The translations under genes and the position numbers were made by a program. The notes below the pieces were generated by a model. It ran no database searches and was not told where the DNA came from. It was given only the letters and a program-made list of their open reading frames with translations. This document shows positions 12,244-22,480 of a stretch of 64,000 nucleotides of DNA, one piece after another. Source of the stretch: Salpingoeca rosetta. Taxonomy: Eukaryota > Protista > Choanoflagellata. The DNA is taken from positions 163,049-227,048 of the forward strand of contig JAWQFM010000030.1 of NCBI GenBank assembly GCA_033442325.1. Direction: 5' to 3'. Each line of letters starts with the position of its first letter. Positions within the stretch are counted from its first letter, which is position 1.

Positions 12244-15200
12244 ATGAACCCCAAACATGCTGACGTGCAGCGCAGGTTCAGCGTGGCGCACGACAAGACA
12301 AGCAGGCGCTACAGCGTGGCCATCTCCGCGGCCTCGGCTCGCCCATCCCGCCTCGGCTTGAACGTGGTGGGCAGAAGTGGCACCGGCAGCGTCACTGGGA
12401 CTCGTGGGGGCGCGCACCTGCGCAGCAGCAACAGCAGCAACCTCATCAGCGCCCGCAACATCGACAAGGGCACACCAGGCAGCGCTGGAAACACGGGGCG
12501 GCAGCACCCACGGAACAGGAACATGCGGCAGGAGCGGGTGTCAACCGCCTCTTCCGCCGCAAGCCTCAGCCCCCTCTCAAAACCACGCTCTGGAAGTCAG
12601 GTGAGGTGGTGTGAGATAGAGGGAGCAAGTGTGTTTCTGGGATGCAGTTCATGCGAATGCATGTTGTGCGTATGTGTGTTATGTGCATGTTGTGCATGTT
12701 GTGTTGTGTGTGCATGTTGTGTGCGTATGTGTGTGCATGTTGTGTGTGTGTGCATGTTGTGCGCGTGTGTGTGTGCGTGTGTGTGTGTGCGTCTTGACAC
12801 GCAGTTTGTCTGGTGTTGCGCTTTCCTTGCGTGCTCATTGTTGACTTCCACGCGAAACGTCAGCGATCACGACCCACCCGCCGGTTGACAAACAAGGCCA
12901 CGTTCAGGCGCCGTCTGCCAGGATGGAAGGGCTATCAGGCCCGCAAGAACGCAGAGGTGTGCAAATGGCGGCGGCTGCTGATGGAGGGGGGGGGGGGGGA
13001 GGGAGGAGAGAACTTGTGTTGGAGGGGGGAAAGGAAGGAACGAGGTGTGTTTGTGTGTGTGTGTGTGTGTGTGTGTGTGTGTGTGTGTGTGTGTGTGTGT
13101 GTGTGTGTGTGTGTGTGTGTGTGTGTGTGTGTACCTGTGCAAATCACCGCCCAAGAGAGCGGTTTGTCATTGCCTGTCAACACAGAAACAACACTCACTC
13201 ATGCGTATGCCATGCACACCATGTGCCATCCACGCACGTACACACACACGCGCGCGCGCGTGTTTGCGTGAATTTGCGGATATTGTGTCCTGCCCCTTGC
13301 ATCTCGTGTCAGCTTGCGCAAGCGGTGAAGGTTGGCGACATTGAGCGGGCGAAGCGATTGCTTCGTGAGGGCGCTGACATCAACGCAACGGTATTGGCCG
13401 CAATTGCACGCATCGTGTTGGTGGTGTTGGTGGTGGTGGTGGTGTTGCTGATTAAGTTGTCGGTGTTGTGTGTGAAGGTGGCTGTTTCATTCATGCAGTG
13501 ATGACACGAACAGCGTACTGTGCTCAACCAACCACACACACACACACACACACACACGCACACACACACACATCTTGTGCACCTGCCACCATCAGGAGCG
13601 CGGCAACCACAATCGCAGTCTCGTGCACGCGTCTGTGCAGTTTCTTCAGGACGACCACCAGCTCTGTGCGTGTTGGCATATATATGTGTGTGTGTGTGTG
13701 CGTGCACTCTCATGTGTGTGTGCGCGTGTGTATTTGCTTCACTCTTCCTCTCTAGTGGATGCGTGCCTTTTGTTTATGTCTCTGCATTTGCGTTTGCGCT
13801 ATCCGTGTTGCCATGCATTCCTTGCATTTCCCATAACCGCCAACCATCAGTGCACCGTCTCACCACTTGCTCACAATGACTTTTCTCATCCTCGCTTCCA
13901 TCTTTCACGTCTCATGTCCATCGCACGTCCCACACCCTCGTTCCATCCCATCAGGCAGTGAAGTGGTTGATGAGTTGGCTGATCTTGGCGCGGACTGCAC
14001 ATGTGTCGACGACATTGGCAACTCTCCGCTACACCTTGCATGCAGCCTTGGTACGGGTGGTGGCTGATGGGCGATGGGTGATTGGCTCTTGGTCGGTGCG
14101 TGGTGGTTGGATGGTGTGTGTATGGTTGTGTGTGATTGTATGGTTGCGTGTGTGTGTGTTTGTGTGTGTGTGTTGTGCTCTGTGTGTGTATGTGCTATGT
14201 GTGTATGTGTGTATGTGTGTTGTGTGTGTGTGTGTATACAGCGATCGTCAGTCCATGAGTTGGGTGTGCATTTCCACGCAGCGTCCGTTCTCACTCACGT
14301 ACGCACATCGAAACACACACTATTACACACAATGACACACTGCAACCACTTGTGCACGTCTGTCAGGCAACCTTCCTGCGGCTGAAGTGTTGTTGAACCA
14401 GAATCTGAGCCCAGTTCAGACAAACAAGCAGGTACACACACACACACTCACATCAGAACACGCAGTGCGCGTGTTCATACACATGCATGCACGCTGACGT
14501 CTGATGTTTGCGTGAAGCAACCACTACTCAACACACCACCACTCCTCATATCATCATACCACCACCACCACCACCACACGTCAGGGCTCCACACCGCTGC
14601 AGCTGGCGGTGGAGAACGGGAATGCGTCCATGGTGCGACTCTTGCTGACCCATCAAGGGTCACAGTCGGCCGTGCGCACACTGTTCACGACACCGCAGGA
14701 CCACATGCACACGCGCATGCGCAGTGACGTGTACCGATCTGCACTGGACAGCAACGCCACCGCTGTCCTCGCTGAGCTCGTGCAGTTCCACACACGCGTC
14801 GGCGGGGTGTCTTTCGATGACATTGCAACGGTGCGACGATGCTGTTGCGGTGTATTGTGTTTTGGTGTGTGTTTTCCTGTGGTGTTGTGTTGTTGTGTTG
14901 TGTTGTGTATTGTGCTGTGTTGTGTTGTGTCATAGCCAACTTTGGAGCTGGCATCCTTGTCATAGCTGGCACACACACTCACACACACTCACACGCACAC
15001 ACACACACACACACACTCACACACTCACACGCACACACACACACACATGCTGCACACANNNNNNNNNNNNNNNNNNNNNNNNNNNNNNNNNNNNNNNNNN
15101 NNNNNNNNNNNNNNNNNNNNNNNNNNNNNNNNNNNNNNNNNNNNNNNNNNNNNNNNNNAGTGACACCGACACCCTCATGGATGCAACATCATCACCATCA

Positions 15201-21200: not shown

Positions 21201-22480
21201 TCTTGGCTGGTGACAAGTTCCGAGAAGCCATCGATTGACCAACGACACACACACACACACACACACACACACACACACACACACACACACATACACACAC
21301 ACACACACACACACACACACACACACACACGCACACACACACACACACAATTATGAAGGAACCAATTCGCACTGTTCGTCAAGTGCACTACCATTCGTGG
21401 CCAGACCACGGCATCCCACAACATCTCTCAGGTGCCGCCATTCATGGCGACGTTGTTGTTGTTGTTGTTGTTGTTGTTGTTGTTGTTGTTGTTGTTGTTG
21501 TTGTTGTTGTTGTCGTTGTTGATGATGATGATAATGATGTGTGGTATCGTTGTTGCAATCAATTTGTCCGCTGATCTTGAATCACTGCTTATGACTGTTG
21601 TCACGCTTCGCGTTCACATGAACCTGCGCCCTTCGTGCCTATTTTTCACGCTCACACACACATGCACACACACACACATTGTCACACAGATCTGCTGTTG
21701 TTCCGGGAGTATGTGCGGGGCGTGCATGCGTCGATGGGTCACAGAGGGCCACTGCTGGTTCACTGCAGCGCCGGTGTTGGCAGAAGTGGAACCTTCATCG
21801 CCATTGATCGCATCATGCGTCGCTTGGAGGTGCGTGCATGTGTGTGTGCACGAGTGTTGATGTCGAGCTTACGCTCCGCCTTTATCGACGAATGCGTGTG
21901 CTCATCCCTTCTTTTCACACACACACACACACATACACACACGCACGCACACACACGCACGCACACACACGCGCGCGTGTCAGGTGATGCCACGCCACGA
22001 ACCCGTGACGAAGGAGACGGTTGATTTGAACAAAATCGTGCACGAAATGCGCACGTGTCGCAACCTGATGGTGCAGACAACGGAACAGTACATCTTCCTG
22101 CACAAGCTCATCACCCACCTCCTCGCCCAGTGCAGAGAGGTGAGACAGGGCGAGCGTGTGTGTGTGTGTCCATGTGTGTGCATGGCTGTGTGTGTGTGTT
22201 TGATCATCGTGAACACGTTCGCTTCTTTGTACGCACACGCTTCTCTGTGCGTGTGTGCGTGTTCAGCACGACAGCTAGTAATCCTCGAAGGTACTTTCCA
22301 TTTCATTCACCACCACCACCACGACGACCACGACGACGACCATCTTGCTCCCAACAGGTTGATGCTCTGGATGTGTCATCGCATCTGCAGTCCCAGTTTG
22401 AGCAGCGACAGCTGGAGTTTGAAAACGCATACGACTCTCTCGAATCCTACAGCGATGACAGTGATGATGACGGCAAGTGA
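12244..22480 (+). CDS. Non-receptor protein tyrosine phosphatase with ankyrin repeats, PDZ, guanylate-kinase-like segment, second PDZ and classical PTP domain
   Basis: More than 20 GT-AG exons. ANK: [51 protein letters not shown] (13313-14830). PDZ1: [10 protein letters not shown]...[25 protein letters not shown] (15655-16160). GK-like: [22 protein letters not shown]...[11 protein letters not shown] (16490-16843). PDZ2: FGFTIGGG...DAILAIDG (17419-17974). PTP: [57 protein letters not shown]. Stop at 22478-22480. The start is uncertain and an N-gap lies in one intron. Confidence 0.9.
15059..15158. other. Assembly gap (100 N)
   Basis: Run of n. Confidence 1.

Follow-up and report, generated by a model that had tools for sequence, protein, structure and literature searches.

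Among the classical non-receptor protein tyrosine phosphatases (PTPs) that carry PDZ domains, PTPN3 and PTPN4 have the architecture FERM-PDZ-PTP and PTPN13 the architecture KIND-FERM-5 PDZ-PTP. Choanoflagellates are a lineage already known for unusual combinations of phosphotyrosine-signalling domains. Here we describe PTSG_10548, a gene of the choanoflagellate Salpingoeca rosetta that encodes two PDZ domains with a piece of a guanylate kinase (GK) domain between them, followed by a PTP domain. It lies in a 64,000-nucleotide stretch of DNA (assembly GCA_033442325.1, contig JAWQFM010000030.1, positions 163,049 to 227,048 of the forward strand), which we call the window; positions given without a contig name count from its first letter.

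The PDZ-GK part of this protein finds its closest described counterparts in the MAGI scaffolds. In MAGI the GK domain is devoid of CORE and LID, and PDZ0 takes their place (Zhang et al. 2023, PMC10171801). That this truncated GK is a working phosphopeptide reader, dependent on the neighbouring PDZ0, was shown only in 2023; the phosphate ligands in MAGI2 are R143, Y155 and Y183, and E149 braces R143 (PMC10171801). For Monosiga brevicollis, de Mendoza et al. (2010, PMC2859873) described two “MAGI-like” proteins without WW domains and one MAGUK-like protein with an added phosphatase-type domain. The same authors could not place MAGI GK domains reliably, and they raised convergence for the MAGI of Capsaspora.

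With MAGI1/2/3 (S-SCAM), PTSG_10548 shares a GGAE-bearing PDZ domain, a GK cut to the GMP-binding lobe about 40 residues further on, and the R/E/Y/Y phosphate site. In contrast to these proteins it lacks the WW pair, has one further PDZ domain instead of five and ends in a tyrosine phosphatase; the helix that precedes the TTR motif and two hydrophobic-groove residues differ as well, and compared with animal MAGI its GK lobe is less derived. The GMP-binding lobe resembles that of the guanylate kinase enzymes (GUK1/Gmk), whereas P-loop, CORE and LID are absent. PTPN3, PTPN4 and PTPN13 are, like PTSG_10548, non-receptor classical PTPs with PDZ ahead of the catalytic domain, but PTSG_10548 has neither FERM nor KIND, it contains a GK lobe, and its catalytic domain is no closer to PTPN4 than to the receptor-type PTPs. 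The proteins described for Monosiga likewise represent lineage-specific re-use of GK-containing scaffold units; PTSG_10548 differs in lacking SH3 and a full GK, and a fusion of PDZ0-GK with a classical PTP is not described in the portion of PMC2859873 available to us. PTSG_10548 is a lineage-specific domain shuffle, and the combination builds on known kinds, namely PDZ-bearing non-receptor PTPs and the choanoflagellate re-use of MAGI-type units.

Results

Gene model and transcript evidence

PDZ-GK-PDZ-PTP is the product of a single transcribed S. rosetta gene, which is represented by the public model PTSG_10548 (NCBI “hypothetical protein PTSG_10548”, 1049 amino acids; annotation record on scaffold GL832992.1 of assembly GCA_000188695.1). 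The public protein is the exact translation of 17 GT-AG exons between 15177 and 22480 on the + strand. The long linker exon, used as a query against 1.8 billion cluster representatives, returned one protein, PTSG_10548, at 100% identity. Database searches used the exons one at a time and, in addition, the public protein; exons were concatenated only for the translation check. From 13.3 to 22.5 kb the + strand carries short coding exons separated by introns rich in (CA)n/(TG)n repeats.

The original prediction, made from the letters of the DNA, had joined the exons 16398-16520 and 16725-16843 into a GK-like peptide. Read by hand, both exons are preceded by an AG acceptor and followed by a GT donor, the first in phase 1 and the second in phase 0, and the codon at their junction encodes D. 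GT-AG introns with matching phases lead from 15819, at the end of the first half of the first PDZ domain (PDZ1), through 16067-16160, 16398-16520, 16725-16843, 17103-17206 and 17419-17554 to 17863-17974. RNA was mapped over 14300-20299, using two raw stranded runs (X21 and X22) and Logan contigs from two other studies (X4 and X9); the part from 20300 to 22480 rests on the public model and the unbroken match to PF00102. The joint between the two GK exons (16517>16722, GT..AG, cut +3) was seen in 4 and 3 raw reads of the two runs and in one contig from each of the two other studies, and thus raw reads, contigs of two further studies and the public model all agree with the predicted junction.

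Further canonical joints were found in the RNA at 14428>14582, 15316>15654, 16841>17101, 17204>17417, 19434>19693 and 19824>20231, and of these 16841>17101 and 17204>17417 connect the GK exons with the second PDZ domain (PDZ2). Contig X9 rec6 (1781 nucleotides) starts at 15234 and reaches the linker at 19035; it takes in PDZ1, the two GK exons, the exon that follows them and the two PDZ2 exons. Contig X4 rec3 (1701 nucleotides) covers the range from 15654 to 19035 and likewise contains PDZ1, the pair of GK exons, the exon after this pair and linker sequence, the PDZ2 pieces not being among the matches listed for it. According to these joints and contigs, which come from three studies, a single mRNA spans PDZ1 to the first PTP exons, with PTP exons 1 and 2 reached. 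Skipping of the GK exons, named beforehand as an outcome that would speak against the GK assignment, was not reported in the RNA over 14300-20299, and both exons are included in all RNA seen. None of the PDZ, GK and PTP exons is touched by the gap in the assembly at 15059-15158, which is upstream of them all.

Domain content

Pfam assigns to PTSG_10548 a PDZ domain at residues 46-127, Guanylate_kin at residues 162-218 (38-40 bits), a second PDZ domain and Y_phosphatase at residues 756-1001 (248 bits). The Guanylate_kin match found on the spliced protein is limited to profile positions 31-87 of 182, in line with the predicted GMP-binding lobe without P-loop, and the peptide across the junction of the two GK exons corresponds to residues 164-210, approximately. 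The second of these exons alone (searched as 16718-16849) beats the curated Pfam cut-off, with 28.2 bits vs. 25.2 for PF00625 (E 1.9e-6, profile 44-81). Neither half of PDZ2, being too short to score alone, gave a match in the exon-by-exon Pfam search, and the same applies to the first half of PDZ1 and to the first GK exon.

The GK piece is the GMP-binding lobe only, without functional P-loop, CORE or LID, and such a lobe cannot be a kinase. It contains no GxxGxGK[ST] loop, and Leu stands in place of the second GMP-phosphate arginine. A GTGK sequence 19 residues before TTR, where two bacterial GK alignments start, was examined as a possible vestigial P-loop; it was rejected, since this piece alone matches no solved chain and lacks GxxGxGK[ST].

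WW (PF00397, at E up to 1), SH3, FERM and L27 had no Pfam match in PTSG_10548. The 35-residue post-GK exon runs directly into PDZ2, with no WW pair between. Concerning the core MAGUK arrangement PDZ-SH3-GK, there is no SH3 match and GK profile positions 88-182 are absent, so that this core is not present. Residues 332-735, approximately, are of low complexity, acidic and match no family. The protein is predicted to be cytoplasmic, signal and membrane features having been judged from Pfam only.

Likeness of PDZ1-GK to the MAGI N-terminus

PDZ1, the linker and the GK lobe are, as judged from sequence and from 3Di, collinear with the N-terminal PDZ0-GK of MAGI. With residues 40-335 as query, the only relatives in the length range searched were animal MAGI1/2/3 (best E 8e-20). 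A single BLASTP high-scoring segment pair (HSP) aligned PDZ1, the GK lobe and the linker between them, which is as long as that of MAGI, to residues 26-199 of MAGI1b and 30-205 of MAGI3 (26-28% identity, E about 1e-11). In phmmer, one 183-residue stretch (query 10-192) matched MAGI2 PDZ0-GK (PDB-code: 7ykf, E 1.2e-8), the only solved chain that one such stretch covers across both domains, and the top three Foldseek matches were the MAGI2 PDZ0-GK crystals 7ykg, 7ykh and 7ykf (E 1e-10). The GGAE motif after the PDZ carboxylate loop and the cut of the GK right after the YG motif are common to MAGI and PTSG_10548. The MAGI-type order of PDZ0 and GK that had been proposed for this locus is upheld by the collinear HSP, the single stretch on 7ykf and the Foldseek top three.

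The phosphate-site residues R143, E149, Y155 and Y183 of MAGI2 correspond to R170, E176, Y182 and Y210 of PTSG_10548. In an alignment with ten MAGI N-termini, R170, E176 and Y182 stand on invariant columns and Y210 on a column that is at least 90% conserved. Two AlphaFold2 models show PDZ1 and the GK lobe as confident units, the latter with a predicted local distance difference test score (pLDDT) of 73-83; as to the supramodule packing of PDZ1 on GK, the models lend no support either way. PDZ2 was also tried as the equivalent of MAGI PDZ0, to which it has a weak match in 7ykf (E 0.07), and was rejected because PDZ1 is the domain collinear with the GK lobe.

The affinity to MAGI that the original prediction had claimed was found to hold for the pair taken together. 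Domain by domain it does not hold, as the GK is nearer to the yeast enzyme and DLG4, and PDZ1 is nearer to PTPN4/PTPN3; the WW pair and the PDZ1-5 array of MAGI are absent. We therefore regard the unit as MAGI-type in arrangement and binding-site residues, and the protein itself as not a MAGI because the two WW domains and the PDZ array are absent.

Tyrosine phosphatase domain

The PTP domain is full-length, its PF00102 match covering profile positions 1-233 of 234, and in the exon-by-exon search six PTP exons tile the profile from 1 to 233. The KNRY-type motif, the WPD loop, HCSAGxGRSG (the HC(X5)R P-loop) and the QTxxQY Q loop are all present in the HMMER alignment to LAR D1 and in the exon translations. 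By its motifs, the catalytic domain is a classical PTP with every catalytic motif intact, as had been read from the DNA at the outset. Among the PTPs compared, LAR, VE-PTP and PTPRJ score 195-205 bits (LAR D1 195 bits) and PTPN4 171 bits.

Relatives and paralogs

Searches with residues 40-335, the PTP region and the GK region turned up no other protein that combines PDZ, GK and PTP, which agrees with the view that the fusion is not known from animals. The PTP-region search was dominated by tandem-domain LAR-type receptors, and a single-domain ortholog with a score under roughly 350 bits would have gone unlisted. When the GK region (128-245) was used by itself, the 51 candidates yielded no protein other than PTSG_10548, and a literature search found no publication naming PTSG_10548 or its domain combination.

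Within the S. rosetta genome there are at least 17 GK-like exon matches. On the minus strand of contig C6 (about 320,200-323,500), two tandem MAGI-type PDZ0-GK units are followed by another PDZ, and these paralogous units carry a MAGI-like helix before the TTR motif. One of them (at about 320.5 kb) is the nearest relative of the GK lobe, with 47% identity over 47 residues, and the opening strand of the PDZ in that unit is very similar too. Several GK-like exon matches also lie within a few kb at C5:569,948-573,467 and at C17:459,430-462,996, which points to multi-GK genes in this genome; the two clusters recall the multi-GUK MAGUK-like proteins reported for Monosiga.

Ankyrin exons and the assembly gap

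Ankyrin repeats were found by exon search upstream of the PDZ exons at 13301-13420, 13942-14064 and 14576-14836, and the RNA contains the splices 14050>14367 and 14431>14585. The splice between exons b and c (Table 1) is seen in an X4 contig, whose loose end at 14366 carries the letters of 14020-14049. Exon a ends in phase 0 and exon b needs one carried base; therefore a further small exon must lie somewhere within 13391-13954. In the public annotation the ankyrin part is a separate gene of 344 residues (12244-14965) that ends just left of the assembly gap, on the same strand as PTSG_10548 and 211 nucleotides away from it across the gap.

The annotated start of PTSG_10548 is the first ATG after the gap (15177), 19 nucleotides to the right of it, and the reading frame stays open as far back as the gap edge (15159). 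This ATG may not be the true start, and the 5′ end of the gene is probably longer than annotated. On the other side of the gap, contigs X4 rec1 and X9 rec5 cover 14582-14830 and then go on for about 318-320 further nucleotides; these letters are absent from 14300-20299, from the window and, with up to 2 mismatches allowed, from the entire assembly, and they are in frame for the ten codons shown. The left flank of the gap (14840-15058) consists of (TG)n/(CA)n microsatellite sequence and resembles the local introns in this. Because the ankyrin mRNA splices at 14830 into letters that the assembly does not contain, an exon probably lies in the gap, and the gap is probably longer than its nominal 100 N. 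Both public model ends at the gap look like artefacts: the ankyrin model reads through the used donor at 14830 into the (TG)n intron up to a stop, and PTSG_10548 starts at the first ATG.

Read depth on the ankyrin side vs. the PDZ side is 3.8 vs. 5.2 in X21 and 5.3 vs. 4.3 in X22, and the corresponding values for the X4 contigs are 176 vs. 175. The PDZ-side contigs begin at 15234, inside a (GCA)n run.

Table 1. Exons and other features of the PTSG_10548 locus, in window coordinates. Joints are RNA splice joints; “exon map” refers to the exact translation of the public protein.
Feature	Position	Strand	Basis
First exon of public ankyrin model, Ser-rich N-terminus, possible 5′ part of same gene	12244..12600	+	ATG 12244; donor cag|gtgagg at 12600; outside RNA-mapped region
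Ankyrin exon a, 26 codons	13313..13390	+	AG/GT flanks; Pfam Ank 17 bits on 13301-13420
Ankyrin exon b	13955..14050	+	AG/GT flanks; Pfam Ank_4 22.9 bits; spliced to exon c
Ankyrin exon c	14367..14431	+	AG/GT flanks; joint 14428>14582 (GT..AG, cut +3) in raw reads, X4 and X9 contigs
Ankyrin exon d, last before gap	14585..14830	+	Pfam Ank 26.5 bits; contigs X4 rec1, X9 rec5; GT donor after 14830
Assembly gap (N), probably conceals one exon or more	15059..15158		mRNA letters after 14830 missing from assembly
First exon of PTSG_10548, Ala/Ser/Thr-rich	15177..15318	+	Exon map; joint 15316>15654 in reads and contigs
PDZ1 (PDZ0-like) first half, GGAE motif	15656..15819	+	Exon map; aligns to MAGI PDZ0
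PDZ1 second half	16067..16160	+	Pfam PDZ 17.4 bits on 16064-16156, profile 57-81; exon map
PDZ-GK linker and start of GK lobe (TTRPP)	16398..16520	+	Exon map; joint 16517>16722; no Pfam match alone
GK GMP-binding lobe	16725..16843	+	PF00625 28.2 bits, profile 44-81; joints on both sides
Short post-GK exon, into first PDZ2 strand	17103..17206	+	Exon map; joints 16841>17101, 17204>17417; no Pfam match; low AlphaFold2 confidence
PDZ2 first half	17419..17554	+	Exon map; second PDZ of PTSG_10548; contig X9 rec6
PDZ2 second half	17863..17974	+	Exon map; contig X9 rec6 piece 17862-17972
1212-nucleotide exon: about 400-residue Ser/Ala/Thr- and acid-rich linker and PTP N-terminal lead-in	18226..19437	+	Exon map; 100% to residues 332-735; contig pieces 18224-19035; joint 19434>19693; no domain
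PTP exon 1 (KNRY-type motif)	19696..19826	+	PF00102 profile 1-20; joints 19434>19693, 19824>20231
PTP exon 2	20233..20342	+	PF00102 40.6 bits, profile 24-59; exon map
PTP exon 3	20534..20624	+	PF00102 38.9 bits, profile 60-89; exon map
PTP exon 4	20932..21051	+	Exon map; within unbroken PF00102 match
PTP exon 5 (WPD loop)	21359..21431	+	PF00102 profile 131-152; exon map
PTP exon 6 (catalytic HCSAGxGRSG loop)	21690..21829	+	PF00102 41.9 bits, profile 156-197; exon map
PTP exon 7 (Q loop)	21984..22139	+	PF00102 31.9 bits, profile 199-233; exon map
Last exon: acidic C-terminal tail and stop codon	22358..22480	+	Exon map; no family match

Other observations in the RNA

Raw RNA reads accumulate by the hundreds on two intronic patches, 16209-16230 and 16973-16994, and most of them have a mate orientation opposite to that of the gene's own reads. 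The patches are linked by a non-canonical joint (16230>16977, AG..GC, 6 extra letters) and show (GT)n loose ends. These reads probably derive from another highly expressed transcript that shares microsatellite-flanking sequence, and not from a product of PTSG_10548.

Two places in the linker exon vary among the reads. At 18993, in low-complexity sequence, about one third of the RNA reads have A in place of C (10/32 and 13/37 in the two raw runs), for which allelic or strain variation, or reads cross-mapped from a similar repeat, could be responsible. At 18315-18321, in a Ser/Ala-rich repeat, three linked differences (G>C, T>A and G>T) occur in some of the reads and also close to the end of one X4 contig, and cross-mapping is their likely cause.

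Discussion

What could a tyrosine phosphatase gain from a truncated GK domain? The explanation we favour, with moderate confidence, is that PTSG_10548 is a PTP equipped with a MAGI-type PDZ-GK unit, PDZ2 and an acidic tether of about 400 residues, and that it would act as a phospho-Ser/Thr-directed phosphatase. By analogy with the work on MAGI2, PDZ1-GK would read phospho-Ser/Thr peptides, and PDZ2 may bind C-terminal peptides. Acting together, PDZ1-GK and PDZ2 would bring the tethered phosphatase to selected complexes of phosphorylated partners, and Ser/Thr phosphorylation of a partner would in this manner lead to local tyrosine dephosphorylation. A coupling of a Ser/Thr mark to the erasure of phosphotyrosine in one chain is not known from animals, whose MAGI proteins are known to recruit phosphatases, PTEN among them, only in trans.

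Several observations weigh against this explanation. In PTSG_10548, Y178 of MAGI2 is replaced by L and T185 by A, and the helix that bears R130, Y134 and T137 ahead of the TTR motif is not recognisable. Taken by itself, the GK lobe reaches 40.6 bits against yeast guanylate kinase and 34.9 bits against DLG4 (PSD-95), compared to 26.0 bits against MAGI2, and the yeast enzyme is also the best solved match of the GK exon (37-41 bits). PDZ1 alone is nearest to the PDZ of PTPN4/PTPN3 (E 5e-4; 37 bits). In the AlphaFold2 models the linker has a pLDDT below 50 (about 30), and the PDZ1-GK pair is not superposable on MAGI2, with a root-mean-square deviation of 10-14 Å. Finally, no ortholog was found in other species by the searches with residues 40-335, the PTP region and the GK region. 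These points are taken up below with the alternatives on which they bear.

The first alternative concerns the ankyrin part only. The original prediction had described ANK-PDZ-GK-PDZ-PTP as one gene; this stands for PDZ-GK-PDZ-PTP, which has one mRNA and one model, but not in the same way for the ankyrin repeats, which belong to a separate public model and are connected to the PDZ exons by nothing that bridges the gap. On balance, we think it probable that the upstream ankyrin repeats are the N-terminus of the same protein, joined to it via the exon lost in the gap. That they instead belong to a neighbouring gene, with the ankyrin mRNA ending and the phosphatase mRNA starting inside the unassembled stretch, appears possible, although we lean away from it. 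The locus is annotated publicly as two models, and ankyrin and PDZ exons are not connected by any read or contig, 15159-15270 having been skipped as a repeat in the mapping; the donor at 14830 (phase 0) is moreover out of frame with the acceptor at the gap edge (15160), so that further sequence is needed between them. On the other hand, neither of the two annotated ends at the gap seems real, expression is similar on both sides, and the first ten codons after 14830 are open, all of which speaks against two separate genes.

It has also to be considered that the GK remnant is an inert relic or spacer. PTSG_10548 would then be a PDZ-targeted phosphatase comparable to PTPN3/PTPN4 without FERM, and the likeness to MAGI would be without functional meaning. 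The affinity of PDZ1 alone to the PTPN4/PTPN3 PDZ, the loss of several MAGI2 contact residues, a MAGI linker helix that is not predicted and searches that found no orthologs to show constraint would fit such a protein. We nevertheless hold it to be unlikely, as PTSG_10548 retains the three phosphate-coordinating residues together with their salt-bridge partner, its GK lobe shows good conservation with respect to real guanylate kinases and folds confidently in the models, and the GK exons are always included in the RNA seen. In addition, the PTP domain is not closest to PTPN3/4, for which its score is lower than for LAR, VE-PTP and PTPRJ.

An origin of the PDZ-GK pair independent of MAGI, in which a DLG-like or enzyme-like GK was truncated beside a PDZ within choanoflagellates and the arrangement is convergent, seems to us rather improbable: the higher scores of the GK lobe with yeast guanylate kinase and DLG4 than with MAGI2, its nearest relative being a paralog in the same genome, and the unreliable placement of MAGI GK domains together with the convergence raised for Capsaspora MAGI (PMC2859873) speak for it, but it is opposed by the collinear HSP over PDZ, equal-length linker and GK lobe cut at the same point after YG, by the shared GGAE motif after the PDZ carboxylate loop and by the MAGI-like helix before TTR in the paralogous S. 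rosetta units.

The explanation of PTSG_10548 as a phospho-Ser/Thr-directed phosphatase can be carried one step further. The common ancestor of choanoflagellates and animals may already have possessed PDZ0-GK as a portable cassette for reading phospho-Ser/Thr, which in PTSG_10548 would be wired to an active PTP, and perhaps to ankyrin repeats, as a single-chain device that turns Ser/Thr marks into the erasure of phosphotyrosine. We put this forward as a speculative proposal, the truth of which we rate as doubtful.

For the public annotation, the analysis provides a correction at this locus, since both gene ends at the gap look artefactual and the assembly lacks at least one exon. A choanoflagellate PDZ-GK unit in which the phosphate site is kept supports a pre-animal origin of the unit and its movement between genes as one cassette; further copies are present in other S. 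rosetta genes. If the reader function is true, its fusion to an intact PTP would provide a unicellular relative of animals with a simple form of cross-talk between Ser/Thr and Tyr phosphorylation.

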